Positions 5,168-40,023 of a stretch of 64,000 nucleotides of DNA are shown here, piece after piece; the stretch's first letter is position 1; every line of letters starts with the position of its first letter. A program made the translations under genes and the position numbers. The DNA is taken from the NCBI RefSeq assembly GCF_031769215.1, contig NW_026781985.1, positions 62,001 to 126,000 of the forward strand. The letters are read 5' to 3'. The notes beneath the pieces are model-generated. The model was not told the origin of the DNA. It made no database searches and saw nothing but the letters and a program-made list of their open reading frames with translations. This DNA comes from Ylistrum balloti. Its lineage: Eukaryota.

Positions 5168-5219
5168 GTTTGTTCGTTTGTTCGTTTGTTTGTTTGTTTG
5201 TTTGTTTGTTTGTTTGTTT
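5168..5219. repeat. (TTTG)n microsatellite
   Basis: Direct reading. Confidence 0.9.
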
Positions 5220-6188: not shown

Positions 6189-6354
6189 GTATATATTGAA
6201 AATCAAAACATTAACATGGCATGTAAAATCGTATGAAATCGCTAACGTTTTCCGGCCTGGTGGCCGTCTTCAGGCGTTTCCACAAGGCCGGAAAACGTTA
6301 GCCATTTCATACGATTTTACTTGCCATGTTAATGTTTTGATTTTCTATATATAC
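6189..6354. mobile_element. Short foldback element (~75-bp arms, 16-bp loop), probably an inverted Penelope-like element terminal remnant, set in (AT)n-rich flanks
   Basis: Arms ~6189-6263 and ~6280-6354 are reverse complements with few mismatches. The element contains the hammerhead, and hammerheads and inverted terminal duplications are known features of Penelope-like elements. Confidence 0.6.
6235..6280 (-). ncRNA. Minimal type-I hammerhead ribozyme (Penelope-like-element type, palindromic stem III)
   Basis: The minus strand reads GAAACGC-CUGAAGA-CGGCC(ACCA)GGCCG-GAAA-ACGU-UA-GCG(A)UUUC. This gives an intact CUGANGA/GAAA core, a 5-bp stem II, a self-complementary AACGUU stem III, a UUA cleavage triplet, and stem I GAAACGC pairing with GCG.UUUC. 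Confidence 0.75.
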
Positions 6355-7873
6355 GATACACCAAGCTTTTATCTTTTTTTAGTTATATATCTATATGAGT
6401 GTGTGTATGTATACATATAGTTTAATAGACGGAGACTTCGATTTGAATTACCATATTTCAATATATATTTCTTCCATTATGTATTTAGTTACTTTGATTT
6501 AGAAAACACATGTTTACTCTTTACACATGAATGATAGGTATGAGACGTGATCGATCTTCAGAGTGCGCGGAGATGTGTATGGTGCAATAGATGGCTTCAG
6601 ATCGAGTTGTAAACGTGCTGGAATTTACGTCCCCAAAAGGGCACGTCGCGTGTCAGGCTGAATAGTTCTCCTACAATGAATTTCCGGTCAATGCACGTGA
6701 CAACTGACACTACACAGCTGCTAATCTACACCAGGCATGTATTGTGTGACGTAATCTGTGGATAATTTGTTTTAATGACGTTTGTAAGACCATCCCTGAA
6801 ATTAGAGACCGACAATCTTGTGTAATACAAAATCGTAAATTTATTCAGCAGAGATAATCGTATTCTTAACAGTATTCTTTATATATTCTAACTCTGCAAA
6901 TTGTCAAACTTTATTTCACAACATTTGAGGAACACGTGTGACAATTTACGTTAGCAAATGTGATATGGCGAAATTCAGGAGTGTTAAAAAAAAACTCAGA
7001 TAGACGGATAGTTGACAATAGATAGGTGTGAATGTTCAAGTGCGGAATGGAACCGGAGCTTTGTTTAAGACGAAGATACATTTATTAATAAGATTTAAAG
7101 AGCAGTTTTAACGCTAGATATAACATGTCAGCATTCAAGAAAAAAGAAAAAACCAAAAAAGCAAAACAAAAGGACAATTAAACGCAGAAATAGGAAAATT
7201 ATAATTATATAATTATAATACACAAAACGTATGTAGAAATTCATCACAAAATAATATCGGTATTTTTCGAGCGTCGAAAAACTGGGTTACCAATATATTT
7301 TTTTAGATAGAGTTAGGTCAAGGTCGGTGTTATTGTTTCTTTTCATGCTAGAAATATCTACAACAGAGGATAAAAAAACTGTGGGCTAATTCATAACATA
7401 ACATCTTAAATGGAATTCATTCATTATTTCTCTATATCAATTACAAGATGAAAATGATCGTTATTTATTGATGGAAAATTCACAGTCAAAGGGCCGACTT
7501 TACATATCCGTATGGCTGATCACGTGCTGGTCTAATTATAGACTCTCAGTTGTACATGCCTTGTTAAGATATAATGAAGTTGTTAACAATGTCATCCCAA
7601 TATTACATAACTGTAATTTTCTTGTCGTTATAATTATACACGGTCATTCCTGATCAAATAATGTAGCGTTTCACTCTTGATAGAAACTTTATGTCAGATA
7701 AAAACGTCTCCCTATCGTGTAATTTTCGGCTCCGTTGGCTGTCAAGCTTATCGCGAAGTGAAAGGGAAGTAACTCTGACATGTAAGAATCGTAGTATAAA
7801 AAAAGTCAGACAATAAACTCGTTTGTTAAAACAAACATATCCATATATTCCATTGTCGTGTAATTAGCCGCTT

Positions 7874-11200: not shown

Positions 11201-11238
11201 TCTATGTCATGAATTCCATTCACATTTTCACCACTTGG

Positions 11239-17200: not shown

Positions 17201-20200
17201 AAAGTAACAATTTGTTATATATATACTCGAAGTGGTGTATCAATAGGATGGTTGCATGGTGCATGGTAAAGGATGGCCACACATGGTGAGGAATATATTA
17301 AAGGAGTGGTTAGAGGAGTGGTATCATGGTAAAGGAGTGGTGCATCTATGGTAAAGGTGCATCATGGTATTACGGAGTGCATCATATAAAGGAGTGGGCA
17401 TCATGGTAAAGGAGTGGTGCATCATGGTAAAGGAGTGGTGTATCATGGTAGAGGAGTGGTGCATCATGGTAAAGGAGTGGTGCATCATATTAGAGGAGTG
17501 GTATATCATGATAAAGGAATGGTGCATCATGGTAAAGGAGTGGTGCATCATGGTAAAGGAGTGGTGCATCATATTAGAGGAGTGGTATATCATGGTAAAG
17601 GAATGGTGCATCATGGTAAAGGAGTGGTGCAGAGGAGTGTATTACGGTAAAGGAGTGGTGTATCATGGTAGAGGAGAGGTGCATCATGGTAAAGGAGTGG
17701 TGCATCATATTATAGGAGTGGTATATCATGGAAAAGAGTGGTGCATCATAGTAAAGGAATGGTGTATCATGGTAGAGGAGTGGTGAATCATGGTAAAGGA
17801 GTGGTGCATCATATTAGAGGAGTGGTATATCATGGTAAAGGAGTGGTGCATCATATTAGAGGAGTGGTATATCATGGTAAAGGAGTGGTGCATCATGGTA
17901 GAGGAGTGGTGTATCATGATAAAGGAATGGTGCATCATGGTAGAGGAGTGGTGTATCATGGTAAAGGAGTGGTGCATCATATTAAAGGAGTGGTATATCA
18001 TGGTAAAGGAGTGGTGCATCATGGTAAAGGAGTGGTGTATCATGGTAGAGGAGTGGTGCATCATGGTAAAGGAATGGTGCATCATATTAGAGGAGTGTAT
18101 TACGGTAAAGGAGTGGTGCATCATATTAGAGGAGTGGTATATCATGGTAAAGGAGTGGTGCATCATGGTAGAGGAGTGGTATATCATGGTAAAGGAGTGG
18201 TGTATCATGGTAAAGGAGTGGTGCATCATGGTAGAGGAGTGGTGTATCATGGTAGAGGAGTGGTGCATCATGGTAAAGGAGTGGTGCATCATATTAGAGG
18301 AGTGGTATATCATGGTAAAGGAGTGGTGCATCATGGCAGAGGAGTGGTGTATCATGGTAGAGGAGAGGTGCATCATGGTAAAGGAGTGGTGCATCATATT
18401 ATAGGAGTGGTATATCATGGTAAAGGAGTGGTGCATCATATAAGAGTAGTGGTATATCATGGTAAAGGAGTGGTGCATCATGGTAAAGGAGTGGTGCATC
18501 ATGGTAGAGGAGTGGTATATCATGGTAAAGGAGTGGTGCATCATATTAGAGGAGTGTATTACGGTAAAGGAGTGGTGCATCATATTAGAGGAGTGGTATA
18601 TCATGGTAAAGGAGTGGTGCATCATGGTAGAGGAGTGGTCATATCATGGTAAAGGAGTGGTGCATCATGGTAAAGGAGTGGTGCATCATGGTAAAGGAGT
18701 GGTATATCATGTGCATCATAAAGGAGTGGTGCATCATGGTAAAGAGGAGTGGTGCATCATGGTAGAGGAGTGGTATATCATGGTAAAGGAATGGTGCATC
18801 ATGGTAAAGGAGTGGTGCATCATGGTAGAGGAGTGGTGCATCATGGTAGAGGAGTGGTGCATCATGGTAGAGGAGTGGTGTATCATGGTAGAGGAGTGGT
18901 GCATCATGGTAAAGGAGTGGTGTATCATGGTAAAGGAGTGGTGCATCATGGTAAAGGAGTGGTGCATCATATTAGAGGAGTGGTATATCATGGTAAAGGA
19001 GTGGTGCATCATATTAGAGGAGTGGTATATCATGGTAAAGGAATGGTGCATCATGGTAAAGGAGTGGTGCATCATGGTAGAGGAGTGGTGTATCATGGTA
19101 GAGGAGTGGTGCATCATGGTAAAGGAGTGGTGCATCATATTATAGGAGTGGTATATCATGGAAAAGGAGTGGTATATCATGGTAAAGGAGTGGTGCATCA
19201 TACAAGAGTAGTGGTATATCATGGTAAAGGAGTGGTGCATCATGGTAAAGGAGTGGTGCATCATGGTAGAGGAGTGGTGCATCATGGTAGAGGAGTGGTG
19301 TATCATGGTAGAGGAGTGGTGCATCATGGTAAAGGAGTGGTGCATCATATTATAGGAGTGGTATATCATGGAAAAGGAGTGGTATATCATGGTAAAGGAG
19401 TGGTGCATCATGGTAAAGGAGTGGTGTATCATGGTAGTGGAGTGGTGCATCATGGTAGAGGAGTGGTGTATCATGGTAGAGGAGAGGTGCATCATGGTAA
19501 AGGAGTGGTGCATCATGGTAGAGGAGTGGTGTATCATGGTAAAGGAGTGGTGCATCATGGTAGAGGAGTGGTGTATCATGGTAAAGGAGTGGTGCATCAT
19601 GGTAGAGGAGTGGTGTATCATGGTAAAGGAGTGGTGCATCATATTAGAGGAGTGGTATATCATGGTAAAGGAATGGTGCATCATGGTAAAGGAGTGGTGC
19701 ATCATGGTAGAGGAGTGGTGTATCATGATAAAGGAATGGTGCATCATGGTATATCATGGTAAAGGAGTGGTGCATCATATTAGAGGAGTGGTATATCATG
19801 GTAAAGGAGTGGTGTATCATGGTAGAGGAGTGGTGCATCATGGTAAAGGAATGGTGCATCATGGTAAAAGAGTGGTGCATCATGGTAGAGGAGTGGTGTA
19901 TCATGATAAAGGAGAGTAAAGGGAGTGGTGTATCATGAGTAGTGGGTAGAGGATTGGTTTATCATGGTAAGGAGTGGGCATCATGGTAGAGGAGTGTATC
20001 ATGGTAGTGGGGAGATATATCATGGTGGAGGGGGTGTATCACAATAAAGCAGGGGTGTATCATGGTAGAGGGGAGTTTATCACGGTAGAGGGGGTGTATC
20101 AGGATAGAGGTGAGGTGTATCATGAAAAAAGGGAGGTGTATCACGGTAGTAGAGTAGTGTATCATGGTCGTGGGGTGTATATCACGGTAAGGGTGAGATG

Positions 20201-22547
20201 TATCATGGTAGAGGAGTAGTGTATCTCAACTGAGGGTTGTTGTGTCAGTGGAGAAGTAGTGTATCACAACAGAAGAGTGTTGAGGCATGGTAGGGAGGTA
20301 AGCGTATGACGGTAGAGGTGAGGTGTATCATGGTAGAGGTGAGGTGTATCACGGTAGAGCGGTATGTCACAGTAGAGGAGTAGTGTATCATGGCAGAGGA
20401 GTGGTGTATCAAAGTAAAATATGGGTGTATCACGGTATAGGAGAGGTATATCAAGGCAGATGTGTAACATGAAAGAGGAACGATCTGTCACTGTAGAGAG
20501 GAGGTGTATCACGGAAGAGTGGTATGTCACAGTAGAGAAGTAGTGTATCATGGTAAAGTAGGGGTTATCAAGGTAGAGGTGAGGTGTATCACGGCAGAGG
20601 TGAGGTGTGTCATGGTAAAGGTGAGGTATATCACGGTAGAGGTGAGGTGTATCATGGTAGAGGTGAGGTGTATCACGGTAGAGGTGAGGTGTATCACGGT
20701 AGAGGTGAGGTGTATCACGTAGAGGTGAGGTGTATCACAGTAGAGGTAAAGTGTATCACGGTAGAGCTGAGGCGTATCACGGTAAAGGGGAAGTGTAATA
20801 CGGTAGAGGTGAGGTGTATCACGGCAGAGGTGAGGTGTATCACGGTAGAGGCGAGATGTATCACGTAGAGGTGAGGTGTATCACGGTAGAGGTGAGCTGT
20901 ATCACGGTAAAAGGGGAGGTGTATCACGGTAGAGATGAGCTGTATCACGGTAAAAGGGGAGGTGTATCACGGTTGAGGTGAGCTGTATCATGGTAGAGGT
21001 GAGGTGTATCACGTAGAGGCGAGGTGTATCACGGTAGAGGTGAGGTGTATCACGGTAAAGGTGAGCTGTATCATGGTGGAGGTGAGGTGTATCACGGTAG
21101 AGGTGAGCTGTATCGTGGTAGAGGTGAGGTGTATCACGGTAGAGGCGAGATGTATCACGTAGAGGCGAGGTGTATCACGGTAGAAGTGAGGTGAGGTGTA
21201 TCACGGTAGAGGTTAGCTGTATCACGGTATAGGTGAGGTGTATCACGTAGAGGCGAGGTGTATCACGGTAGAGGTGAGGTGTATCACGTAGAGGCGAGGT
21301 ATATCACGGTAGAGGTGAGGTGTATCATGGTAGAGGTGAGGTGTATCACGGTAGAGGTGAGGTGTATCACGGTAGAGGTGAGGTGTATCACGTAGAGGCG
21401 AGGTGTATCACAGTAGAGGTAAAGTGTATCACGGTAGAGCTGAGGCGTATCACGGTAAAGGGGAAGTGTAATACGGTAGAGGTGAGGTGTATCACGGTAG
21501 AGGTGAGGTGTATCACGGTAGAGGCGAGATGTATCACGTAGAGGTGAGGTGTATCACGGTAGAGGTGAGCTGTATCACGGTAAAAGGGGAGGTGTATCAC
21601 GGTAGAGATGAGCTGTATCACGGTAAAAGGGGAGGTGTATCACGGTTGAGGTGAGCTGTATCATGGTAGAGGTGAGGTGTATCACGTAGAGGCGAGGTGT
21701 ATCACGGTAGAGTTGAGGTGTATCACGGTAAAGGTGAGCTGTATCATGGTGGAGGTGAGGTGTATCACGGTAGAGGTGAGCTGTATCGTGGTAGAGGTGA
21801 GGTGTATCACGGTAGAGGCGAGATGTATCACGTAGAGGCGAGGTGTATCACGGTAGAAGTGAGGTGAGGTGTATCACGGTAGAGGTTAGCTGTATCACGG
21901 TATAGGTGTGGTGTATCACGTAGAGGCGAGGTGTATCACGGTAGAGGTGAGGTGTATCACGTAGAGGCGAGGTGTATCACGGTAGAGATGAGGTGTAATA
22001 CGGTATAGGGGAGGCTTTGCCTTTATTCTTTCAACATTATGTTGATTTCCGAATAATATGTAGATAGCAAAGGTTTATATTTACATCACGTGATAACGAG
22101 TTAATACCTCCAAAGTCATGTAATGGGATCGGCATCGGTATGCTGACAGGGTGATGATTCAGATCGAACACCCCTTACTGAATATCTTACGTCATTCAGA
22201 GATTTAATGTCTAGACGTTATGCAATCGCACGATTTGTCGATGACAAATGTCATTCAGAGTGTTATGGAGGTCGCTACCAGATTTGCCACCTGTGGTACT
22301 GTTGACATGTGTACCTGTACGCTGTATGTGTGACAAAACACGGTCTTGTCTATGCGTGTAGGTATTTAGATATTCTTTCTTCAATCGAAAGCACGTTATA
22401 GAAAATCCAAACAGTAAATTAAATTGAATACAGCGAATAAACAAAATATTACGAACAGCTTACCTGTTACTCCAGACTTCCTGGTTTAAGACAGGTGTCA
22501 CAAGGGAAGTCACTCTCATTCAAAAACAAACTCCGCTTACCTTCCAT
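11239..22547 (-). CDS. Single-pass membrane protein with cytoplasmic PPxY motifs and an acidic tail (WBP1/VOPP1/CYYR1-like architecture), ~206 aa. Exons: 22547-22541 (tentative), 12125-11937, 11663-11239.
   Basis: Exons 12125-11937 and 11663-11239 join in phase 1 with good GT/AG sites. The product has a hydrophobic helix (GGVVGPIVGSVVVIAFIISLFCF), a stop-transfer RRRR, then LPPPY and LPPSY and a D/E-rich repeat. The candidate start exon ATG GAA G|gtaagc has the matching phase 1 but is less certain. Confidence 0.65.
13892..16830. repeat. Satellite array A: 41-bp unit (21+20 dimer) atcacggtagaggagagatgt-atcatggtagtgtaatgttc, ~70 units
   Basis: Period of 41 read directly (cacggtagag at 13921 and 13962); highly homogeneous, with a short degenerate interruption near 16490-16560. 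Confidence 0.97.
17300..19940. repeat. Satellite array B: 21-bp unit catcatggtaaaggagtggtg
   Basis: Direct reading; produces 7-aa-periodic ORFs in several frames. Confidence 0.97.
19940..22015. repeat. Satellite array C: 20-21-bp unit gtatcacggtagaggtgaggt, degenerate at its left end
   Basis: Direct reading; contains a 673-bp internal direct duplication. Confidence 0.95.
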
Positions 22548-24799
22548 TAAGTGGTCGACACTGCTGATTCACAGCGTGTACATTGCCATAATTTTGAAAA
22601 ACATATATCGGGAATTTAATATTTAATATTCGTGTTTATATGTGACCTCTTGTAACACACTCTGTGTGTCTGAGCGTACAATAAAATCTGAAATCTGAAA
22701 TCTGGAATCAGGGATAACGAGACGTTTGAAGGATAGATACCATACATTATCTATGAAAGAAAATGAATCAAAACAATTTGTTTTCTAAACTCGGCAGCTC
22801 TTATTAATTTGGCATGGGTTATGTTTTTTTTTTTTTTTTCTTATTTTGAGGGTGTGTTGTTTTTTTTTGGGGGGGGGGCGGGGGGTTGGGGGGGAGGGGT
22901 TTAGGGGAATGCTTTTTTGGGTTTTTTTCCAAACTGTATCGATATCTAATGAGATGATTCGGTAAGGCCGAACTTTGTTTGTACTCTTGATGATATTATT
23001 TAGATTGATACAGGATTTCATTTGAATACTTAGACACATGACAACGTGTAACAAGAGGCACGTAATAGTTGACCTTAGTAGACATGACAGGATGGACAGT
23101 GATCATACAGATAGTGCTTCAACAATACAATGTATGTATACTTGAGATGTATCAACACTACATCAACAACAAGGTGTGTTTAGTACATATTTCATATTCA
23201 GGCAAATACTAATGTTTTATGTTACTTACATACATAAATACTGATTATAGATATATCAACAAAAAACATAAATAACAAGAAAAGTGACGAAAATTGTATA
23301 AAAATATATAAGTTATCAAAGCAATGGATGCCAGGTATTAAAGAGAAATTATAAAACTCGATTACAGTACATGTATATTGACAATAGGTTCTTTCATTTC
23401 GCATTTGATCGATAGTAAGTTGGAATGTGCTTTCTTTCCAACATGTTTACATATTAGTTACTTATTTTTTTCTTTTCGCTTTCTTTTTAATTTTTTGACA
23501 TCAACAAACTTAAATGAGGAACTCTACATTCCAGGTATTTGTACGTAAACGTTATTTTGAACAAAAACTAGAAAACATTTTCATGATTAAAAATTCAGTC
23601 TTGAAAATCGATTACAAATATTCTATTGACGAGTTGGATGTCAAAAATATATATATATGTTAAAAATAAAATATAAGGTTTACATTTTTCAGCACTTCAT
23701 CCGTAGTACTAGAGATAGTTCAACTTGAAACGAGGAAAGTCCAGCGGGCGTCACATTTGACAACATTCGTGGCTTGTTGTTAATTTTACAAAATTTGATA
23801 GTTTGAAAACATGTGTAGACATATTTTGTATAAATATAATTAATAATGTCAATTATATCTGACGTAAAATATGAATAATACTCAAATTGATTTTTTTATT
23901 TTATTGGTCATTTTTATGTAAATAAAATAAACGGGAAATTACTGCTCCTGATGTATTAGGGCTGTTTTTTCTCAACAAAACGTGAATTTTATTTACCAAG
24001 TTTATTAAGACAATGAGAATATCATGTCTGATGACCACCGCTCACTCACCAGCTGTAATCAACACTATTGTCAATCTGTAATAGAGTTATCACGGGTAGC
24101 GTGCGACCCTAACGGATCAATTGGATCCAATTAACAACCAATTAACACCATAGAAATTCGTTATCGATTTTAACACGTTGATAGATCATCGATCACCAAT
24201 ATTGATCACCTATTATCACGATAACTTGTTGATCACGAGGCTGTTGTACCGACCGTATATTCTCTGTTACGTGTCAAGACGTTGAAAGATAACAGTTTAT
24301 TTTTAAATAATATAAATGCGAATTGTTCTTAGTAATCAGACATTTTATTTTTAAAAAAAAGATGACGTCTAATATATTAAAAAAATGACGTCATCAATTT
24401 TATTTTAAAAGCAGTAATGTTGGCCTTTTGTTTCGTATATTTGCTGACAAGTATCTCTACAAATTTGTTTAATATATACAATTATCGAAAAGACTAATGG
24501 TCATTAATTTTTTTTCTTAACATTTAGGATTATCTTTAAATTCACCTTCAAATAATATTTTGAATGAAATAAAATACATGAAAAGAGAATTTTTTTTCTT
24601 CTGTTTTTAAATTTCTTTCTTTCACATAACACTTGTAATTATGTATATTAAATGACACCATATGGTCAGTACCATTTTTATTACTTTAATACATTTCAGA
24701 ATATAAGTTTTAATGTTGAATTAAATCAAACGTTTCTGTATTTAACCTGTATATACATCTGCCTCGTTAAGATAAACAACAACTGGTACAGCTCGTTGT

Positions 24800-25050
24800 T
24801 TACCTTTGAAGTCACAGATGAATGTTTATAAAAGTAATCAAGGGTTTAAAGTCTGTTGAACTTTTCAGTCGATCACGTGACACAATAGGACATTGTTTAC
24901 ACGTTAAAGACAAGATGAGCAGAGTACCTATCCCCTGGCCCCCGGGACTGATTGGATGTGTCTCACGCGAGGAGAGCAGACACCTTGAGAAAGTCGACGG
25001 GCGCGGAGTAGATGTCGATTTCCCTGTGGCGTATAAGTACAATTCTCATC
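24800..25050 (+). promoter_or_regulatory. Putative promoter of cdc25 copy A
   Basis: CpG-rich stretch just upstream of the non-coding exon whose donor is gtaagt at 25161. It contains TTTGAA (24805, CHR-like), CACGTG (24874), inverted CCAAT (24951) and GGGCGCGG. The TSS cannot be determined from sequence alone. Confidence 0.55.
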
Positions 25051-25433
25051 AACATTGTCCTCTACATCATCGTTATATACAATCATTAGCTCTCATCGAA
25101 ATCCTGACTTGTTCTCCAACAACCTTCGCCTTCATCAAATCTGTACATCTGCTGTAAATCGTAAGTTCATTTTTGTGTAAGACACTTAAGATATTTTAAT
25201 GCGATCAAAATAATTGGTAAAAAAATGTTTGATGAATCTGTTAAAGGAGAAAAAAAATCATTATTCGTCTCATATTGACTAGTACGATAATGTATAATAA
25301 ATTCATCGTTTATATTTTATATTGTTTATCATATAAAACGAGCTTATTACACTTTAGTCGATCTTGTTAATTGATATGTCAGAATGTGTGACGTCACATT
25401 GAACAGTTGTCCTCTTGCCTTAATTCTCAGGTG

Positions 25434-28349
25434 ATGGCATCAACTTTGATTTTGACCCCATGCCGCAGCCTTGACTTCGACGACGAAGAGGTCAAATCTT
25501 TGATGACCCCGGAAGTAAAGAAGGATCTCCGTCATCTGTTCGATGATGATGATTCTGGGCTAGGAATAGATGATCACTTGGTAAGTAAATTTTTTGAAAC
25601 ATAAATCGAATCTGGTTACATTCACTAATCTTGATCCAGTCATGCAGAATAGACTCATATTCATACATAATTATAAAATTTCCAATCTAAACATGAATTT
25701 ATGATCTCCATGAAAACTCTTTTACATTTCTTAATTTCAATACTGCCGTAGGTCAATTGTTTTTACTTCTTATCAGTTTTATTTCTTTTCGAATCGGAAA
25801 AATATTGTTTGAGAATATTAAGTACAGATTTTCTCTCTGATGATATTAAGCATAAATTTTCTCCATGGTGATATTAAGCGTAAATTTTTCTATGATGATA
25901 TCAAGCGTAAATTTTCTATGATGATATTAGCATAATTTTTCTCTATTATGGTTAAAAATGACTTGTACATTTGAGCGATAATTCATATCAAAATGAAGTA
26001 AAACCACAAATATATAACGGTGACTGATTTTTTTTTCAGGCAGAGAGTCCATCAGCTGACTTCAAGGTGTCCACACGGTTAGATTTCAGCAACGTGTTCG
26101 CTACCCCAGGAAAACATATTGTAAGTGTAAAACACTAAAGCCTTTAAAATGTGAATTCAATGGATGAATTAATTGTTACATACATACCAACTTCGGTCCG
26201 TCCGACGCTTCTATTTCACACAACCAAGCGTTTATTTACAATACAACTTAATAATTTACTATTTTGTACTATTTTCAGATTAAAAGAAACGACACCGAAA
26301 TCAAGCGTTCCCTCTTCTCAGGCAAGCGTTTCCGTGATGAAGCTGACGATTTCCTAACTCCCTCACCAAAAGCACAAAAGAAGAATGATGGGGTTTTCAG
26401 CAGGACGATGTCTTGTGGGGTAAGCATATATTAGTTCGGGAAGTATAGATACTAACGAAACGTTTTGGTTTTAAATAACACTCTTTGTTGGTAAAGATAC
26501 GAAGTGGGAATTTACAAAAAAGGGGACAGGACAAGAAAAAGAAAGCCAAACCTTAACCACCAGATTTTCACCATGTTTAAAATAACCGCTGACTGATAAC
26601 TTTCTCAGTGGGATGATTAATTATGACCCAAATTTTCGTATCACAAATTTACTGATCTGTGATACGCATGTATCGTAAGACAATTCTACAATCATTTTTT
26701 ATTGTCTTTTCAACAGGAAAGACCGATATTGAGATCACGTGACCTTAAGGCTGCTGTTAACCGACTGGTGGAGGAGGACTTGGTGGGGGATGCGACAGAA
26801 ACGTTTTGTCTTCCGACTATCCGGGGCAAACATCAAGACCTTAAGTCTATCTCCGTAAACACGGTAAGGCAATGACGTCAACGATCATGTTCCGTAAAAT
26901 GTTTGTGCTTCTTTTCATACTCAGTTACATGTACTTATTAATCGATTGATTTACTCATTTAATTACTCGCCTTTTCGTTCGTTTATTTCTTTATTAATAT
27001 CTATTTTTGTTTACTTGTTTACACAGATGACTGACCTTTTAACCGAAAGATATGATGACGTCATCAATAACTACAGAATCATCGACTGCCGATACCCATA
27101 CGAGTATGAAGGAGGCCATATCAAGGTTTGTACCATTACATGAAGTGAATTTATCAGCTTGTGAATCAGAATATAAACTATACCAGCACCTATGATGTTG
27201 GTGAATGGCGAGATCAAAATAACTACCAGCTTTGAAATACTGGGATTATTGATAGGTCATAATTTGGTGTAAATTGCAAAATTTTCGTAACTGAATCAAA
27301 ATCAAAATATTAAAACAGGACAAAAATGTTGAGTTTTGATTGAAATTATTGATGTTATCAGATTTTTGCTGAAAATTTTCAGGACGCGGAGAACAGATAT
27401 ACACGTGATCAGATTCAACAGCTGCTTCATGAGACACCGACTCGTGACGTCACCGGAAAGAGAAACATTCTCATTTTCCACTGTGAATTCTCCTCCGAGA
27501 GGGGACCCAAAATGTAAGTTTCTCGTCTGCTTAAGTTAGGGTACCTATAATTACCATTCGACATATGATCGACTTCATTATTTAGTTTATGAATACACAT
27601 CGTTGAAAATGTGTAAATTATCAATTATGTTATCATTTTCCCCTTCAATAATAATATGTAATTATTCTATTTATATAATCATAATTGTTTTTTTATTTAC
27701 GTGTTCACATATTTCGTTTTAATCTCATTAACTTTACATAATGTGTTTGATTTTTCTCTTCGATTTCTGTTTTTATGTTTTCATTATTTTCTTTTCCCTA
27801 AAGGATGCGTTTCCTTAGATCTCAGGACCGTACTCAGAATGAGGCTAACTATCCGTCCTTGACCTTCCCCGAGGTGTACCTCCTGGACGGCGGCTACAAG
27901 GCATTCTATCACACAGAAAAGGTAGTGTATGCTTGTTTTATTTAAATTCAATGCTGCCATAGAAATATTAATGCAACTTCATGAAATATAATCATTTTTC
28001 AAACGATATCTTTTAATTTGACAATATGTACTTTTACTTTAGTTTAAGATATAAAAATAGGCTTTTCAAGATTATATGTAAACCACAAAAATTAGAAGAC
28101 ATCGTAGACAAAGAAATACTCTCAAAAATGTTAACATAAAGATGGTTGTATATTTTTTCTTAAATCCTAGAAGTATTGACATTGTAATTAAACGTTAACT
28201 TTTTCTCCTCACAGACACTGTGCCATCCCCAGGAATACAAACCAATGCTGCATCCTGGCCATTCTGAAGATTTACGTCACTTCCGAACTCGATCAAAATC
28301 CTGGTCGGCGGGGAACAAGAAGAGAACACTTTCCCGGCGTCGCCAATGA
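25434..28349 (+). CDS. cdc25: Cdc25 (M-phase inducer/string-like) dual-specificity phosphatase, copy A, 332 aa. Coding exons: 25434-25580, 26040-26120, 26279-26419, 26717-26863, 27027-27125, 27383-27513, 27804-27921, 28215-28349. A non-coding exon ends at 25160.
   Basis: All introns are GT-AG with consistent phases (0,0,0,0,0,2,0) and give one open frame. Canonical Cdc25 motifs are present: [35 protein letters not shown], catalytic [10 protein letters not shown] (HCX5R), [19 protein letters not shown] and C-terminal RSKSW. Confidence 0.97.
25825..25945. repeat. ~27-bp tandem repeat (x4) in a cdc25 intron, mirrored at ~33720-33840
   Basis: gatgatattaagc(a/g)taaattttct repeated. Confidence 0.75.
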
Positions 28350-28675
28350 ACCGCTCTAAAGAAATAGACAGCATCGTGCAACAATCTGGATACTTCTTTA
28401 AAATTAGATGACATCGGCGTTATTCCAGAAATTACGAATTGTGGTGTAAATTTCTGAGACTTTTAAACTCGTGATGCAATTGACAACATGTCTGGGTTTG
28501 AAGGATGTTTTAACACTTACATAAGTGGGCTTTCGTATATCATGAAGTGCTACATTAACGTTACGTTGTGAGTCCCTAGCGATTATAAGAAAAATGTTGG
28601 ACAATTTCAACTATACAAAGTGCTGTGGTGATTCCGAAGTGCTATTTTTGTTTTTTCGTTTGTTAACTCATTTCT

Positions 28676-28681
28676 AATAAA
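28676..28681 (+). terminator. Polyadenylation signal AATAAA of cdc25 copy A
   Basis: AATAAA ~330 nt after the stop codon, followed by a U/GU-rich tract. Confidence 0.65.
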
Positions 28682-28952
28682 AGATTGATGGACATTTCTT
28701 AATCTGTGTAATTTTTATTTTCAGGAACAATTAACACAAGGAGATTGATTTTCGTCATGTAATTGGCATTCGGGCAAACATTATTTTCTCTTAAAATATA
28801 ATTTGAAAACTTAGCCAAACATTATGATAACACGCTGTATACATAAAAGCAAAAACTGAGCTCAATGTTATCAAAAACATGAGACGCAAATTAGCGTTTC
28901 AGGTGCTTGAGTGATGAATTGATGTGTCGTTTATCTCTCGCTAAACTTAATT

Positions 28953-30918
28953 ACTCCATAGGAGAGTCCATGAACCTGTTACAGTCCCCTGAGGTGGTGA
29001 TACACTATAGGGAAGTCCATGAACCTTTTACAGTCCCATGTGGTGGTGATACACTATAGGGGAGTCCATAAACCTGTTACGATCCCCTGTGGTGGTGATA
29101 CACTATCGGGAAGTCCTTAAACCTATTAAAGTCCCCTGTGGTGGTGATACACTAAATGGAAGTCCTTAAACCTATTAAAGTCCCCTGTGGTGGTGATACA
29201 CTATAGGGGAGTCCATGAACCTGTTACAGTCCCCTGTGGTGGTGATAAACTATACGGAAGCCCATGAACTTGTTTTAGTCCCCTGTAGTGGTGATAAACT
29301 ATAGAGAAGTCCATGAACCTTTTAAAGTCCCCTGTGGTGATACATTACAGGGGAGTCCATGAACCTTTTACTGTCCCCTGTGGTGGTGATACACTATAGG
29401 GAAGTCCATGAACCTGTTACAGTCCCCTGAGGTGGTGATACACTATAGAGAAGTCCATGAACCTGTTACAGTCCCCTGTGGTGATACACTATAGGGAAGT
29501 TCATTAACCTGTTAAAATCCCCTGTGGTGGTGATACACTATAGGGGAATCAGTGAAGCTCTTACAGTCCCATGTGGTGGTGATACACTATAGGGAAGTCC
29601 ATGAACCTGTTACAATCCCCTGTGGTGGTGATACACTATAGGGAAGTCCATGAACCTGTTACAAGCCTCTGTGGTGGTGATACACTAGAGGGGAGTCCAT
29701 TAACCTCTTACACTCCCCTGTGGTGGTGATACACTATAGGGGAGTCAGTGAAACCTGTTACAATCCCCTGTGGTGGTGATACACTATAGGGGAGTCAGTG
29801 AAACCTGTTACAATCCTCTGTGGTGGTGATACACTAGAGGGGAGTCCATTAACCTCTTACACTCCCCTGTGGTGGTGATACACTATAGGAGAGTCAGTGA
29901 AACCTGTTACAATCCCCTGTGGTGGTGATACACTATAGGGGAATCAGTGAACCTCTTACAATGCCCTGTGGTGGTGATACACTATAGGGAAGTCCATGAA
30001 CCTGTTACAGTCCCCTGTGGTGGTGATACACTATAGAGAAGTCCATGAACCTGTTACAGTCCCCTGTGGTGGTGATTCACTCTTGGGGAGTAAACTAACC
30101 TGTTACAATCCCTTGTGTTGGTGATACACTATAGGGGAGTCCATTAACCACTTACACTCCCCTGTGGTGGTGATACACTATAGAGAAGTCCATGAACCTG
30201 TTACAGACCTCTGTGGTGATGGTACACCAGAGGGGAGTCAGTGAACCTGTTACAATCCCCTGTGGTGGTGATACACTATAGAGAAGTCCATGAACCTGTT
30301 ACAGACCCCTGTGATGATGGTACACCAGAGGGGAGTCAGTGCCCTGTGGTGGTGATACACTATAGGGAAGCCCATGAACCTGTTACAGTCCCCTGTGGTG
30401 GTGATACACTATAGAGAAGTCCATGAACCTGTTACAGTCCCCTGTGGTGAAGATACACTATAAGGGAGTCAGTGAACCTATTACAGTCCCCTGTGGTGGT
30501 GATTCACTCTTGGGGAGTAAACTAACCTGTTACAATCCCTTGTGTTGGTGATACACTATAGGGGAGTCCATTAACCACTTACACTCCCCTGTGGTGGTGA
30601 TACACTACAGGGAAGTCCATGAACCTGTTACAATCCCCTGTGTTGGTGATACACTATAGGGGAGTCCATTAACCACTTACACTCCCCTGTGGTGGTGATA
30701 CACTATAGAGAAGTCCATGAACCTGTTACAGACCTCTGTGGTGATGGTACACCAGAGGGGAGTCAGTGAACCTGTTACAATCCCCTGTGGTGGTGATACA
30801 CTATAGGGAAGTCCATGAACCTGTTACAGTCCCCTGTTGTGGTGATTCACTCTTTGGGAGTAAACTAACCCATTAAAGTCCTCTGTTGTAGTAATATACT
30901 ATTGGGGAGTCAGTGAAC
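28953..30918. repeat. 49-bp minisatellite (~40 units) in the palindrome spacer; consensus gtccatgaacctgttacagtcccctgtggtggtgatacactatagggaa
   Basis: Period of 49 read directly (acagtccc at 28981 and 29030); units continue with point variants and small deletions to ~30918. Confidence 0.95.
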
Positions 30919-30979
30919 CTCCTTGTGTTAATTGTTCCTGGAAATAAAACTACACAGAATAAGAAATGTCCATCAATCT

Positions 30980-30985
30980 TTTATT
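30980..30985 (-). terminator. Polyadenylation signal AATAAA of cdc25 copy B
   Basis: Mirror position of the copy A signal (TTTATT on the + strand). Confidence 0.65.
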
Positions 30986-31315
30986 AGAAATGAGTTAACA
31001 AACGAAAAAACAAAAATAGCACTTCGGAATCACCACAGCACTTTCTATAGTTGAAATTGTCCAGCATTTTTCTTATAATCGCTAGGGACTCACAACGTAA
31101 CGTTAATGTAGCACTTCATGATATACGAAAGCCCACTTACTTATGTAAGTGTTAAAACATCCTTCAAACCCAGACATGTTGTCAATTGCATCACGAGTTT
31201 AAAAGTCTCAGAAATTTACACCACAATTCGTAATTTCTGGAATAACGCCGATGTCATCTAATTTTAAAGAAGTATCCAGATTGTTGCACGATGCTGTCTA
31301 TTTCTTTAGAGCGGT

Positions 31316-34230
31316 TCATTGGCGACGCCGGGAAAGTGTTCTCTTCTTGTTCCCCGCCGACCAGGATTTTGATCGAGTTCGGAAGTGACGTAAATCTTCA
31401 GAATGGCCAGGATGCAGCATTGGTTTGTATTCCTGGGGATGGCACAGTGTCTGTCAGGAGAAAAAGTTAACGTTTAATTACAATGTCAATACTTCTAGGA
31501 TTTAAGAAAAAATATACAACCATCTTTATGTTAACATTTTTGAGAGTATTTCTTTGTCTACGATGTCTTCTAATTTTTGTGGTTTACATATAATCTTGAA
31601 AAGCCTATTTTTATATCTTAAACTAAAGTAAAAGTACATATTGTCAAATTAAAAGATATCGTTTGAAAAATGATTATATTTCATGAAGTTGCATTAATAT
31701 TTCTATGGCAGCATTGAATTTAAATAAAACAAGCATACACTACCTTTTCTGTGTGATAGAATGCCTTGTAGCCGCCGTCCAGGAGGTACACCTCGGGGAA
31801 GGTCAAGGACGGATAGTTAGCCTCATTCTGAGTACGGTCCTGAGATCTAAGGAAACGCATCCTTTAGGGAAAAGAAAATAATGAAAACATAAAAACAGAA
31901 ATCGAAGAGAAAAATCAAACACATTATGTAAAGTTAATGAGATTAAAACGAAATATGTGAACACGTAAATAAAAAAACAATTATGATTATATAAATAGAA
32001 TAATTACATATTATTATTGAAGGGGAAAATGATAACATAATTGATAATTTACACATTTTCAACTATGTGTATTCATAAACTAAATAATGAAGTCGATCAT
32101 ATGTCGAATGGTAATTATAGGTACCCTAACTTAAGCAGACGAGAAACTTACATTTTGGGTCCCCTCTCGGAGGAGAATTCACAGTGGAAAATGAGAATGT
32201 TTCTCTTTCCGGTGACGTCACGAGTCGGTGTCTCGTGAAGCAGCTGTTGAATCTGATCACGTGTATATCTGTTCTCCGCGTCCTGAAAATTTTCAGCAAA
32301 AATCTGATAACATCAATAATTTCAATCAAAACTCAACATTTTTGTCCTGTTTTAATATTTTGATTTTGATTCAGTTACGAAAATTTTGCAATTTACACCA
32401 AATTATGACCTATCAATAATCCCAGTATTTCAAAGCTGGTAGTTATTTTGATCTCGCCATTCACCAACATCATAGGTGCTGGTATAGTTTATATTCTGAT
32501 TCACAAGCTGATAAATTCACTTCATGTAATGGTACAAACCTTGATATGGCCTCCTTCATACTCGTATGGGTATCGGCAGTCGATGATTCTGTAGTTATTG
32601 ATGACGTCATCATATCTTTCGGTTAAAAGGTCAGTCATCTGTGTAAACAAGTAAACAAAAATAGATATTAATAAAGAAATAAACGAACGAAAAGGCGAGT
32701 AATTAAATGAGTAAATCAATCGATTAATAAGTACATGTAACTGAGTATGAAAAGAAGCACAAACATTTTACGGAACATGATCGTTGACGTCATTGCCTTA
32801 CCGTGTTTACGGAGATAGACTTAAGGTCTTGATGTTTGCCCCGGATAGTCGGAAGACAAAACGTTTCTGTCGCATCCCCCACCAAGTCCTCCTCCACCAG
32901 TCGGTTAACAGCAGCCTTAAGGTCACGTGATCTCAATATCGGTCTTTCCTGTTGAAAAGACAATAAAAAATGATTGTAGAATTGTCTTACGATACATGCG
33001 TATCACAGATCAGTAAATTTGTGATACGAAAATTTGGGTCATAATTAATCATCCCACTGAGAAAGTTATCAGTCAGCGGTTATTTTAAACATGGTGAAAA
33101 TCTGGTGGTTAAGGTTTGGCTTTCTTTTTCTTGTCCTGTCCCCTTTTTTGTAAATTCCCACTTCGTATCTTTACCAACAAAGAGTGTTATTTAAAACCAA
33201 AACGTTTCGTTAGTATCTATACTTCCCGAACTAATATATGCTTACCCCACAAGACATCGTCCTGCTGAAAACCCCATCATTCTTCTTTTGTGCTTTTGGT
33301 GAGGGAGTTAGGAAATCGTCAGCTTCATCACGGAAACGCTTGCCTGAGAAGAGGGAACGCTTGATTTCGGTGTCGTTTCTTTTAATCTGAAAATAGTACA
33401 AAATAGTAAATTATTAAGTTGTATTGTAAATAAACGCTTGGTTGTGTGAAATAGAAGCGTCGGACGGACCGAAGTTGGTATGTATGTAACAATTAATTCA
33501 TCCATTGAATTCACATTTTAAAGGCTTTAGTGTTTTACACTTACAATATGTTTTCCTGGGGTAGCGAACACGTTGCTGAAATCTAACCGTGTGGACACCT
33601 TGAAGTCAGCTGATGGACTCTCTGCCTGAAAAAAAAATCAGTCACCGTTATATATTTGTGGTTTTACTTCATTTTGATATGAATTATCGCTCAAATGTAC
33701 AAGTCATTTTTAACCATAATAGAGAAAAATTATGCTAATATCATCATAGAAAATTTACGCTTGATATCATCATAGAAAAATTTACGCTTAATATCACCAT
33801 GGAGAAAATTTATGCTTAATATCATCAGAGAGAAAATCTGTACTTAATATTCTCAAACAATATTTTTCCGATTCGAAAAGAAATAAAACTGATAAGAAGT
33901 AAAAACAATTGACCTACGGCAGTATTGAAATTAAGAAATGTAAAGAGTTTTCATGGAGATCATAAATTTATGTTTAGATTGGAAATTTTATAATTATGTA
34001 TGAATATGAGTCTATTCTGCATGACTGGATCAAGATTAGTGAATGTAACCAGATTCGATTTATGTTTCAAAAAATTTACTTACCAAGTGATCATCTATTC
34101 CTAGCCCAGAATCATCATCATCGAACAGATGACGGAGATCCTTCTTTACTTCCGGGGTAATCAAAGATTTGACCTCTTCGTCGTCGAAGTCAAGGCTGCG
34201 GCATGGGGTCAAAATCAAAGTTGATGCCAT
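31316..34230 (-). CDS. cdc25: Cdc25 phosphatase, copy B (inverted duplicate), 332 aa. Coding exons on the minus strand: 34230-34084, 33625-33545, 33386-33246, 32948-32802, 32638-32540, 32282-32152, 31861-31744, 31450-31316.
   Basis: Reverse complement of copy A with all splice sites intact. The only coding differences seen are M24I (ATG>ATT) and one synonymous His codon (CAT>CAC) in the catalytic-site exon. Confidence 0.96.
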
Positions 34231-34614
34231 CACCTGAGAATTAAGGCAAGAGGACAACTGTTCAATGTGACGTCACACATTCTGACATATCAATTAACAA
34301 GATCGACTAAAGTGTAATAAGCTCGTTTTATATGATAAACAATATAAAATATAAACGATGAATTTATTATACATTATCGTACTAGTCGATATGAGACGAA
34401 TAATGATTTTTTTTCTCCTTTAACAGATTCATCAAACATTTTTTTACCAATTATTTTGATCGCATTAAAATATCTTAAATGTCTTACACAAAAATGAACT
34501 TACGATTTACAGCAGATGTACAGATTTGATGAAGGCGAAGGTTGTTGGAGAACAAGTCAGGATTTCGATGAGAGCTAATGATTGTATATAACGATGATGT
34601 AGAGGACAATGTTG

Positions 34615-34860
34615 ATGAGAATTGTACTTATACGCCACAGGGAAATCGACATCTACTCCGCGCCCGTCGACTCGCTCAAGGTGTCTGCTCTCCTCGCGTG
34701 AGACACATCCAATCAGTCCCGGGGGCCAGGGGGATAGGTACTCTGCTCATCTTGTCTTTAACGTGTAAACAATGTCCTATTGTGTCACGTGATCGACTGA
34801 AAAGTTCAACAGACCTTGATTACTTTTATAAACATTCATCCATGACTTCAAAGGTAAACA
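34615..34860 (-). promoter_or_regulatory. Putative promoter of cdc25 copy B
   Basis: Mirror of the copy A promoter, with an 8-bp deletion and several substitutions. Confidence 0.55.
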
Positions 34861-36469
34861 ACGAGCTGTACCAGTTGTTGTTTATCTTAACGAGGCAGAT
34901 GTATACACAAGTTAAATACAGAAACGTTTGATTTAATTCAACATTAAAACATATATTCTGAAATATATTAAAGTAATAAAAATGGTACTGACCATATGGT
35001 GTCATTTAATATACATAATTACAAATATAATGTATAAGAAAGAAAGAAATTTAAAAACAGAAGAAAAAAATTCTTTTCATGTATCTTATTATATATCAAA
35101 TATTATTTGAAAGTGAATTTAAAGATAATCCTACTTGTAAAGGAAAAAATACTAGATCAATGAACACAAGTCCTTTTGATAATCATACAAATTAGATAGA
35201 TTTGTCACAATATTTGTCAGTAAAAACACGAAACAAAAACCGTCATTACTGCTGTTATTTGATTTGATGGCGTCATTTGATATCATCTTTCTATGTTGAC
35301 ACGTAACAGAGAATATACGGTCGGTACAACATCCTCGCGATCAAGAAATTAACGAGATGATAGGTAATCAATATTGGTGATCGATGATCTATCAACTTGT
35401 TAAAATCGATAACGAATTTCTACGGTGTTAATTGTTAATCCGATTCAATGAATCAGTTAGGGTCGCGCGCTACCTGTGATAACTCTATGACAGACTGACA
35501 ATAGCGTTGATTACAGCTGGTGAGTGAGCGGTGGTCATCAGACGTTATCCTGATTGTCTTATTTAACTGGGTAAATACAGTTCACGTTTTTTTAGCCATA
35601 AATACACCAGGAGCAGTAATTTCCTGTTGATTCTATTTACATAAAAATGACTAATAATTTTTTTTTTTAAAAATCGATTTGGGTATTATACATATTTTAC
35701 GTCCGATATAATTTACATTATTGATATGCCTACTCATATTTTCATACTATCAAATTCTGTAAATTTAACTACAATATAAACACAATAAGCCTTCTTTGTG
35801 CCTCTTTTGTTCCCTTTCCACGACACAAACGCTAAAACGCCAGGTGGTGCAACAAGCTATGGAGATTGTCAAATATGACGCCTGTTGTACTTCACTGGAA
35901 CTATCTGCAGTATTACGGTCAAGTGCCGAAAAACATTAGCCTTACTTTATTTTTAAAAATGTTTTCTTCAAAATCCAACTCGTCAATAGAACATTTGTAT
36001 TCGAATTTCTAAACTGAATATTTAATCATAAAAATGTTTGCTAGTTTTAGTTCAAAATAACGTTCACCTATATTACGTAGAAGTACCTGAAATTTAGAGT
36101 TCATTATTGAAGTTTGAAGAAAAAATACGTAATTTGTGTGTAGGGAGTGTTGCAAAGGAGCAAACTATCTAATTTCTAGTAAAACTTATGGGAAGAAAGC
36201 ACATTCCAACTTACTATCGATCAAATGAAAGAACCTGTTGTCAATATACATGTACTGTAATCGAGCTCTATATGGGACAAGTAATTTCTCTTTAATACCT
36301 GGCTTTGATAATATATACACTTTTATGCAATTTTCGTCCAGACTATGTTTTTTTTATTACTTCCACAGGAAGCTCTCAATCTTCACATTTCATTCACACT
36401 GTCAGATGTCCATTGATACAGATATAATTATACAAAGTGGCATGATAACTCAACAGGGGAGGTAACTGG

Positions 36470-36960: not shown

Positions 36961-38519
36961 TTTTTTATTGACATCATAACTACGTTCAGATTTCTGAAAA
37001 TCTAGTTGCTTTATATGACATTCTCTTGCAAACCAACGGTTGCTAGTATTACATCGTCTGTTGATTTAATTAATGAAAATATGTTAGTTTATAGCCAAAA
37101 TTATTTGATCTTTCCCGATACAATTTTCAAATTAGATAGATATATAGATCGACAGAGATAACATGGAAAATTCCTATATATATAAGTTTGTATAAAAACA
37201 AGTAATTAAAAAGCTGGTCAATTGAAAACAATCACTCGAGCTTACCGTTGTACATGTTTAAATAGTCTGACATTCATTCAACATTCATACAATTCATCAA
37301 CAACCACGAAAAATTTATACCTATGGTAAAAAAGTATCCCTTTTTATATTGAACATGTACTTGATGATAAAAGCAAACAACTTGTGAGTAAAATAATAAT
37401 ATAGTTTTGATTGCACCTGTATACGGTGAGAGAGAAAAAAATAGGAGAGTTACCTACTCTTACACTGGTAAGCACTGCGACCTTTTAAAAGCGAGGAACC
37501 GTGACGTGTTTCGAAAGACAAACTGTTATCGATGCAATCATTAGCCTGATGCAATAATAACAGTAACGTAACGAAGGGAAATGGGCGATAGAGATTTCGA
37601 GCGAAATTATTTTTGTGGCGATAAAGATGGGGAGTTAGTGGGGGAAAGAGTCATGTTGTACGTTCGACACCGATGGGGCGCCACGGTTTCGAGGCGGAAC
37701 GCCCGTCACCATATCAAAAAGTTCCTGGGTGTTGTAACGTTATAAGTACAGGCTTGGACTATTTTATGAGACAATAAATTCCTTTTATGATATGTAAATG
37801 TATTGCAACCATCACGGTGTTGCCAATATATCGACAACGGGTATAAACACGAACCGTGCCTTTACAGCATGAGGGCAGGTCCGGAAAGATTCATGTTGGG
37901 ACGTTTTCCATCCTTTGGGATCGCAATGTGGTCGGCCGAATCACAGGACGATACAATAACCGTTGTTCTGTGTTTTCTAACCCAAACACAAAGCGCAGTC
38001 CCTTAATGACTGCACCTACAAGGCTGCACCTTGCTATTTGACCTACTCATTTGGCCAAATAACTCCCTCGTACCAAAGCCTTAAACAAAATTTTACTACT
38101 AATATGAATGTACCTTATATCACAAATAGCTCTGTTCGCACTGAAAAGAACGATGGAGTTAAATGATACTGAAACGAATATAAAATGACACTTCAAATGA
38201 TAAATTGAATGAAAGAATAGTTTTTGTACATGTTTTCAATTGATTTCCATGTCTAACTGTCACAGTAAATTTTGGAATAAGCTCTTATAACTTACGGAGA
38301 AATTCTGATGACGGGCCAATTTGTCAAAAGGTAACCGAACACTGGTAGTAATATGACAACAGGACAGTAGTCTTGGGTTTTTTCTGTTTGTTTTTTTTTT
38401 CAATCTTTTATTTTTCAAGATTTTTCAGTTCAGGGCAGTAACCCACACACGCTCGCACATACACATCACATAAGTCATGTGGATGGGGAGGAGTGTAGAG
38501 GAGAAGGACTTAGGAAGAC

Positions 38520-39055
38520 TTGAGAACACGTTACAGATGTATTTTGATCTATCCTAACCACAGGGACCTGAGAACTCGTTATAGATGTATTTGATCCTAT
38601 CCCAACCATAGAGACCTGAGAACGCGTTACATGTGTATTTTTACCTATTTCAACCACAGGGACCTGAGAACTCGTTATAGATGTATTTGAAGCTATCCCA
38701 ACCATAGGGACCTGAGAACTCGTTATTGATGTACTTGAACCTATCCCAACCATAGGGACCCGAGAACGCGTTACAGGTGTATTTTTACCTATTTCAACCA
38801 CAGGGACCTGAGAACTCGTTATAGATTTATTTGGACCTGTCCCAACCACAGGGACCTGAGAACACGTTACAGAAGTAGTTGGACCTGTCCCAACCACAGG
38901 GACCTGAGAACACGTTACAGAAGTAGTTGGACCTGTCCCAACCACAGGGACCTGAGAACACGTTACAGGTATATTTTTACCTATTTCAACCACAGGGACC
39001 TGAGAACTCGTTATAGATTTATTTGGACCTGTCCCAACCATATGGACCCGAGGAC
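38520..39055. repeat. 48-bp minisatellite, ~11 copies, open on the minus strand as 16-aa S/T/V/P-rich repeats
   Basis: ccaaccacagggacctgagaacacgttacag.. recurs; ORF 38475-39041 shows a 16-aa period. Confidence 0.85.
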
Positions 39056-40023
39056 GCGTTACCGTGCTTTAGACCTATCTATATTTCTCACAGGCCGTTT
39101 GGTAATACATTTTATAGTGGTGCGGATACTAGTGATATCGATATTATCTGTTGCCTTAATTTTCCAGGTGATTTGTTATCATCCCTTGCTTATAGTCGAC
39201 AATTTAGGATTCAGTTTCTGCAGACATCGCCAGACATGAATTGAGCAATGAATTAGAGATGTGGTCTGTACAGGCAACAAAAACTGACAACATCACCCAG
39301 TCCATTACATAGATGTGAGAAATAGACATCACAAGGAAAAAAATGGTTAGGGAATCTTTCTAACGCTATCAATTTATTACTGAATACATAAGTTTCTAAT
39401 AATCAACGGAATATTTGGAAAATGTTGGGTTTTTTTTCTTTAACTGATAATATCTGCAGAAAATTAGGCTGGTAACCCCCATCCGCATCCCAGTCCACAT
39501 TCCCATCCTCAACTCCATCCAACACTCTTCCTCCCATTGAAAAGTCCTGTCTTTATCTGTGGCTACCATTTAGACACAACGATGTATACTATTTTTTCCT
39601 TACCTGCTGAAAGGCCGAAAAGCCCTAGTAGTGGATATAAAACCTAGTAAATAAATAGGTATTACACTAGAAATCACCTCGTGACTACATAAAGAGCATA
39701 TCAACAAACAAGCTAGTCTTTCACGATAATGGCTAACACCTGTCCTCTAACAGTATTAAGTCGTTTTTCTAAAGGTTGGTTTTCCCTGACTCTTTGGTGT
39801 TGACTGTGTGTATATTTATATATATGTTGTCATGGAGAATGCACCATGATAGTTTTGTAAACTTTTGCCAGATCCCGGGTTGTTCTTTGAGTAACAACAG
39901 ATGGACTCTTATGGTCAACGAAAACGTTCTACTAACATCTTGTTCTTTCTTCGAAAAATAGCAATAATTATCATTATTTAGTTTTCGAGATATTAGTATG
40001 CAAAGTAGATGTCATTGATTATA

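Follow-up and report, generated by a model that had tools for sequence, protein, structure and literature searches.

How can two copies of a gene be almost identical, introns included, when DNA that was duplicated along with them has diverged? The question is raised by a 13-kb convergent inverted repeat that was delineated, by comparing arm with arm using blastn and MAFFT, in a 64-kb stretch of the genome of the saucer scallop Ylistrum balloti (GCA_031769215.1; this stretch, called the window below, lies inside a 1.1-Mb contig). Each arm carries one intact cdc25-like gene encoding 330 amino acids, and the two genes are convergent, both being directed at the spacer that separates the arms. We consider it very likely that the arms are an old inverted pair that has been homogenised by gene conversion from arm to arm, and this conversion is probably still active.

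Divergence along the arms of the palindrome

The locus consists of two inverted homologous arms with a non-duplicated spacer between them, which is the definition of a palindrome:

23286-28743, + strand: left arm of the inverted repeat (blastn, MAFFT; collinear matches from 23286/36338 to 28743/30919)
28744-30918, no strand: spacer, asymmetric, in two parts, mostly 49-bp satellite
30919-36338, - strand: right arm, reverse complement of the left arm (blastn, MAFFT)
25434-28349, + strand: left cdc25-like gene, from start to stop codon (read from the sequence; an annotated protein of 330 amino acids, P0001, maps here)
31316-34230, - strand: right cdc25-like gene, intact, 330 amino acids (arm alignment, annotation)

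The part of the spacer next to the left arm is 214 bp of unique sequence (28744-28957); it is followed by about 40 direct copies of the 49-bp satellite unit (28958-30920), which abut the right arm. A perfect fold-back centre, of the type left by chimeric reads, was rejected: matches within the spacer satellite are all direct, with no flip of orientation. On their outer sides the arms are flanked by different unique sequences.

Divergence was measured as substitutions per ungapped column of the MAFFT alignment of one arm with the other. In left-arm coordinates it is high in the outer part, low over the gene and higher again near the spacer:

23286-23729: 16.7% substitutions
23730-24299: 13.5% substitutions
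24300-24579: 21.2% substitutions
24580-24974: 2.6% substitutions
24975-25724: 0.8% substitutions
25725-28519: 0.11% substitutions (3 in 2,795)
28520-28743: 2.2% substitutions

The outer segments contain 70-138 gap columns apiece. A likelihood scan placed the main change-point at about 24632/35025 (2xLRT, twice the likelihood ratio test statistic, of 458), a value reached by 0/200 permutations; the transition at this outer edge is graded across about 24520-24640. Within 24633-28743, a scan for a cold interval isolated one at 25001-28581, with 7 substitutions in 3,580 positions compared to 13 in 521 in the shoulders on either side, a difference reached by 0/300 permutations. The arms were divided on this basis:

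23286-24632 (partner 35025-36338), + strand: outer zone, very likely old and unconverted, 15.7% substitutions (186/1,184 ungapped columns)
24633-25000 (partner 34664-35024), + strand: outer shoulder, about 2.6% substitutions and four indels
25001-28581 (partner 31080-34663), + strand: homogenised core, 7 substitutions in 3,580 bp (0.2%), a 1-bp and a 4-bp indel
28582-28743 (partner 30919-31079), + strand: inner shoulder, adjoining the spacer, 5 substitutions and a 1-bp indel

The outer zone (1.35 kb) holds many indels, some of up to about 70-100 bp, but its homology is collinear from the change-point outward to about 23286/36338. A similarity search of the 64-kb window found no other copy of it, and together these two observations indicate that the outer zone belongs to the same duplication as the rest of the arms.

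The preliminary description of this locus, made by eye, had counted seven substitutions and one 1-bp indel in 25160-28350, and the arm alignment returned exactly this count (substitutions at 25185, 25276, 25505, 25695, 27430, 27601 and 28210; indel at 25720). The 4-bp taag duplication that it noticed near 31140 is the TAAG indel at 28521/31143, and its cluster of single-nucleotide differences at 28580-28730 was recovered as the five substitutions of the inner shoulder (28597, 28616, 28702, 28711 and 28721) with the 1-bp indel at 28712. Further out, where it estimated the arms to be about 80% alike with many indels, the outer zone has 15.7% substitutions and many indels. The boundary that it set at 24700/34950 exists but lies about 70 bp further out, at the change-point given above. 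Both permutation tests reject a uniform profile, as had been argued, and identity does peak over the gene; its shape, however, is one of three nested tiers and not a smooth decay.

The core reaches from about 430 bp before the ATG to about 230 bp beyond the stop codon and includes the whole coding region with every intron. The wider zone of at least 97% identity (24633-28743) takes in, besides every exon and intron, the likely promoter or 5' untranslated region (UTR) and about 400 bp beyond the stop codon, and is thus predicted to be the whole transcription unit. Introns are as identical between the arms as exons are. Purifying selection was therefore rejected as the sole cause of the identity: acting on the protein, it cannot explain the profile because the introns match as well as the exons.

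Within the outer zone, about 105 bp of the left arm (24278-24382) are mostly unmatched in the right arm, and contigs of the four sequencing runs presented below all depart from the window at 24341 and 24370. These observations suggest a polymorphic insert or a repeat fragment in this region.

The arms in other samples

Five public runs contain the locus in their Logan contigs; they come from two studies and bear two coded organism labels. Four of them were aligned on 23300-28950, namely three organism-A runs (X1 among them) and X5. None of the four is the assembled animal, as they show full-depth differences from the window at many places. Both versions of the shoulder sequence 24864-25021 were present in 4/4 runs, one of them left-like and the other with an extra C at 24931 and linked changes; this extra C is the same 1-bp difference that exists between the window arms. 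The depths of the two versions were 17.7/21.0, 16.5/13.5, 18.7/15.5 and 11.2/21.7, each about half of the summed depth. The presence in every run of both versions, with their arm-specific marks, indicates that every sample has two copies. Arm-specific outer contigs had depths of 8-14x, and the core was represented by single contigs at 19-31x, about double.

In the core, X1 differed from the window at 9/418 positions in 24992-25409, 4/503 in 25840-26342 and 23/2,549 in 26402-28950, and X5 at 44/2,753. At nearly every one of these sites the two window arms have the same letter. The core sequences of the runs thus lie about 1-2% from both window arms, which are 0.2% apart. Where the window arms do differ, at 25185, 25276 and 25695, all runs carried the right-arm letter. 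The organism-A runs agreed at 19/21 listed core sites outside the exon-3 patch described below. Random popping of assembly bubbles would make them disagree at about three quarters of the sites of fixed difference between arms, so this agreement indicates that the contigs carry majority letters and not one side of 50:50 arm differences.

Without conversion, all copies would trace back to the duplication, and divergence between arms would be at least as large as divergence between alleles. The core appears to show the reverse, with a divergence between arms about 5 times smaller (0.2% versus about 1%). Paralogues that are closer to each other than alleles are, as seems to be the case in the core, require conversion. 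The preliminary description had expected the gene body to group by species and the flanks by arm; in these short-read contigs the core appears to group by individual and the 24864-25021 shoulder by arm.

Two stretches varied further between the samples. The shoulder haplotype 24633-24893, defined by six substitutions and an 8-bp indel that separate the window arms, was left-like in X1 and X5, right-like in X2 and mixed in X4, with one contig per run at a depth equal to or slightly below that of the core of the same run. The other is a short patch in the third coding exon:

26343-26401, + strand: exon-3 patch, 7 changes in 59 bp (about 12%) relative to the window, 5 synonymous and 2 replacement

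Both versions of the patch were found in the three organism-A runs and the variant alone in X5, while both window arms have the window version only. The patch resembles either a leftover of the former arm sequence or a short tract copied from a diverged donor. Carried on varying copy numbers, the 24633-24893 haplotype and the exon-3 patch look like polymorphisms shared between the arms.

Probable gene conversion and its alternatives

An old duplication with conversion centred on the gene, as first proposed from the letters of the window, is supported both by the profile and by the contigs of the four other runs. What has been observed is the tiers, the intact gene pair and the sample pattern; how breaks are repaired, why the edges lag and how many events took place are deduced from what is established about interlocus conversion. 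When one arm breaks, the other would serve as template for its repair. Owing to the inverted orientation of the arms, crossovers would merely flip the spacer, which would be harmless, so that exchange could continue. Tracts would be limited to sequence that is still similar, ending on the inner side at the non-homologous satellite spacer and on the outer side in the indel-rich zone of about 16-21% divergence, which would be past heteroduplex formation. Sites near these edges would fall under fewer tracts, leaving lagging shoulders of similar age (2.6% and 2.2%), whose last reset would date from a time when the arms differed by about 2.5%. The 3.6-kb core would have been reset very recently, its central 2.8 kb bearing only 3 differences. 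The tiers would thus reflect at least two nested conversion events, one over 24633-28743 and then one over about 25001-28581, and the step from 0.8% (24975-25724) to 0.11% (25725-28519) suggests a third.

It appears unlikely that the converted domain, which matches the whole predicted transcription unit from the conserved upstream blocks to shortly beyond the 3' end, is set by more than passive edge effects. Breaks associated with transcription of the convergent arms could define it; alternatively, selection could keep both copies of this dosage-sensitive cell-cycle regulator the same, while arm states in which an old haplotype patch sits on 0, 1 or 2 copies continue to segregate in the population. 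If this were true, the small autosomal palindrome would be well suited to measuring, in a natural mollusc system, how fast conversion proceeds and how long its tracts are.

Several points weigh against repeated conversion between the arms. Our profile comes from one genome and two arms, in which repeated conversion is not strictly separable from two or three discrete large replacements, and some effect of polishing on the core is formally possible. The evidence from other samples consists of Logan contigs, in which simple bubbles may be popped and depth is a contig mean; the arms are unphased, copy number is deduced solely from depth ratios of about 2:1, and the coded run labels may mean separate animals or pools. 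The relatives that we compared carry direct tandem copies and offer no palindrome in which grouping by arm could be set against grouping by species.

The explanation nearest to repeated conversion is that 4.1 kb of one arm were rewritten once, by a long conversion or by template-switch repair, the finer tiers arising from chance clustering of later mutations. The dominant signal is indeed a single step at about 24632, and no more than 13 differences in the shoulders and 7 in the core underlie the finer tiers. Yet the contrast between shoulders and core was significant (0/300 permutations), the samples lie about 1% from the window in a core where the window arms are 0.2% apart, and shoulder haplotypes and exon-3 patch found on differing copy numbers need events that took place after the alleles diverged; we therefore regard a one-time replacement as quite improbable. 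Still a little less probable is an artefact of assembly or polishing, in which a true core difference of 1-2% was erased by reads mis-assigned between the arms. Near-identical repeats are prone to such errors, but the core still has seven substitutions and two indels next to intact shoulders at 2.5%, so that selective erasure of 1-2% is implausible, and in the four other samples, too, the core is a single sequence with consistent letters and about twice the depth. Taking bubble popping and polishing together, the residual chance of an artefact is small.

Two more explanations deny that the paired arms are an old duplication, and we give very little credit to either. If the arms were two haplotypes of a single-copy locus joined head to head, the 2:1 depth ratio would fit alleles equally well, and bivalve genomes are very heterozygous, with haplotig duplications being common. 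Such a false duplication would, however, need heterozygosity in every sample, given that the assembly and 4/4 other runs have both shoulder versions; it also has to contend with different unique flanks for each arm and an asymmetric spacer within a 1.1-Mb contig, and with outer arms that, at 16-21% divergence and with indels in collinear order, differ more than alleles ordinarily do. Alternatively, a young inverted duplication of 4.1 kb could abut older unrelated repeats, such as transposon copies, that mimic diverged outer arms, and contigs of all four runs exit at 24341 and 24370, hinting that the left outer zone holds an insert that is repeated or polymorphic. Against this, the outer homology is collinear over 1.35 kb, in four ordered blocks that have no other copy in the window, and a young duplication leaves the shoulders unexplained and makes it impossible for paralogues to be closer than alleles.

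The cdc25-like genes, their relatives and comparable systems

Eight coding exons with GT-AG borders were read directly from the left arm:

25434-25580, + strand: coding exon 1, left gene
26040-26120 (annotated start 26046), + strand: coding exon 2, left gene
26279-26419, + strand: coding exon 3, left gene
26717-26863, + strand: coding exon 4, left gene
27027-27125, + strand: coding exon 5, left gene
27383-27513, + strand: coding exon 6, left gene, with the catalytic motif
27804-27921, + strand: coding exon 7, left gene
28215-28349, + strand: coding exon 8, left gene

The annotated acceptor of exon 2 lies 6 bases further in than the one read here. Exon 6, used as the lone query, retrieved with a 100% match the database protein P0001 (330 amino acids), an M-phase inducer phosphatase-like protein of Ylistrum balloti on JAUZWB010000703.1 of GCA_031769215.1; a second gene for 330 amino acids is annotated on the opposite strand of JAUZWB010000703.1, at the position of the right arm. 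P0001 contains a Pfam Rhodanese domain (PF00581, 1.1e-11, residues 184-282), and its residues 141-328 align to the catalytic domain of human CDC25B (1cwr, E 1e-57). A Pfam search of single exons gave nothing above threshold, and a sub-threshold Rhodanese match for exon 5 only. The HCX5R active-site loop (10 residues, not shown) lies in exon 6 of both copies and is conserved in CDC25B. From this homology of the catalytic domain, both genes are predicted to encode CDC25-type (M-phase inducer) dual-specificity phosphatases. Two coding differences separate the copies: 25505 G/T, which places Met24 in the left protein and Ile in the right (M24I), and 27430 T/C, which is synonymous. Intron 1 of both copies holds a 28/55-bp minisatellite (25815-25950 and 33715-33850) that is length-polymorphic in the other samples, where the organism-A contigs lack 75 bp (25764-25840) and those of X5 lack 55 bp (25837-25893).

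In a protein tree, the window gene forms one orthogroup with P0086 of Pecten maximus and P0088 of Argopecten irradians (support 100/99). The Pecten maximus orthologues (LR736849.1, 33.86 Mb; locus L002) number at least three, in direct tandem order at intervals of about 10 kb, and copy 1 is followed by a 38-bp satellite (4722-7656 of that locus); those of Argopecten irradians (locus L003) are direct tandem copies too. No orthologous palindrome was found in Pecten maximus or Argopecten irradians, the nearest relatives compared, which limits what can be claimed about age but not about mechanism. The cdc25-like locus examined in Mizuhopecten is single-copy. In Pecten, copies 2 and 3 share 97.4% identity across 4.27 kb, the difference staying at a fairly even 1-4% from one 300-bp window to the next; a single duplication without later patchy conversion should give such a profile, which contrasts with that of Ylistrum. 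Copies 1 and 2 are 81-92% alike. Two blocks of the Ylistrum arm, 24769-24839 and 24902-25041, have conserved counterparts about 0.8-1 kb ahead of the orthologous genes in both Pecten maximus and Argopecten irradians and are a likely promoter or 5' UTR. Apart from these two short blocks, there were no non-coding matches between Ylistrum and Pecten or Argopecten, the introns giving no alignment. The introns of Pecten and Ylistrum being unalignable and the outer arms only 16-21% apart, the split of the two lineages must be older than the inverted duplication, or else older than the most recent homogenisation of the outer zone. The inverted arrangement at this locus seems specific to the Ylistrum lineage, given the direct tandem copies of the other two scallops.

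Elsewhere in Pecten maximus (LR736849.1, 1.86 Mb; locus L005) we observed another convergent inverted cdc25-like pair, at 10001-14903 and 21034-23854 of that locus, with 348 amino acids each. This pair falls into another orthogroup, of which Ylistrum has one member, and similarity between its arms is patchy, at only 87-92%. A search for proteins of the cdc25 family gave 2,964 matches at E <=1e-20, and among the 120 matches listed Ylistrum balloti had at least 5, Argopecten irradians at least 7, and Mya arenaria and Mercenaria mercenaria about 10 each. Many cdc25-like entries in several bivalves suggest an expansion of the family.

The surroundings of the palindrome are rich in satellites. An 8-kb G-rich satellite (13892-21997) precedes the left arm by about 1.3 kb; its units of about 20-21 and 41 bp give way to a higher-order unit of 83 bp, and it shows a strong GC skew (0.45-0.65) and long spurious open reading frames on both strands. 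A 48-bp satellite (38517-39062) lies 2.2 kb outside the right arm. Its similarity to the 49-bp spacer satellite is weak, consisting of a match of 16 bases only (14/16 identical) in opposite orientation, although the score of this match was reached by 0/200 shuffles. Neither the 49-bp nor the 48-bp unit resembled the 38-bp satellite unit of Pecten. A run of 178 N at 1096-1273 of the window is an assembly gap or masked sequence.

The locus shows how gene copies that are 99.8% identical, introns included, can look newly duplicated although the duplication is, as we think, old. Dating of bivalve gene-family expansions from identity, for cdc25 or other genes, must therefore allow for conversion. 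With its compact 13 kb, which fit within one long read, its nested tiers and its apparently segregating arm states, the palindrome would lend itself to estimating how often conversion occurs, and how long its tracts are, in a marine invertebrate with high polymorphism. Our literature search found no paper joining cdc25, inverted duplication and gene conversion, and no paper on the nuclear genome of Ylistrum.

Comparable systems have been described in other animals. In C. elegans, gene-sized inverted repeats are maintained across species, and their structure outlasts their sequence, implying active homogenisation (Zhao, Chang, Varley, Stormo 2007, PMC1803023). Like the Ylistrum palindrome, these repeats are near-perfect and of kilobase scale, and comprise convergent or divergent pairs of homologous genes plus flanks. 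The present case differs in being that of a bivalve, in its cdc25 genes and in its 2-kb satellite spacer; moreover, the inverted structure was not seen across species, two other scallops having direct tandem orthologues. Palindromes of mammalian sex chromosomes convert from arm to arm, as reported for P6 of the human Y (PMC3723533) and for the primate X (PMC8327919, PMC8981503). They share with the Ylistrum locus the inverted arms, the unique spacer, an identity above 99% through multi-kilobase tracts, and what in Ylistrum look like paralogous variants that are polymorphic among chromosomes. Their arms, however, measure tens to hundreds of kilobases and are uniformly identical to their boundaries, whereas those of Ylistrum measure 5.5 kb, of which only the inner 4.1 kb are homogenised, with a clear gradient; the Ylistrum palindrome has no known link to a sex chromosome and offers only three polarised sites for GC bias. 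Not really different in kind are the young duplicates of Caenorhabditis and Drosophila, in which interlocus conversion has been documented (PMC3966223, PMC3924832): there too, conversion is restricted to the part that is still similar, the flanks diverge and the paralogues look too young. To these the Ylistrum pair adds inverted orientation. The process is well known and involves no new mechanism, but the gene and the animal in which it is met here are new.

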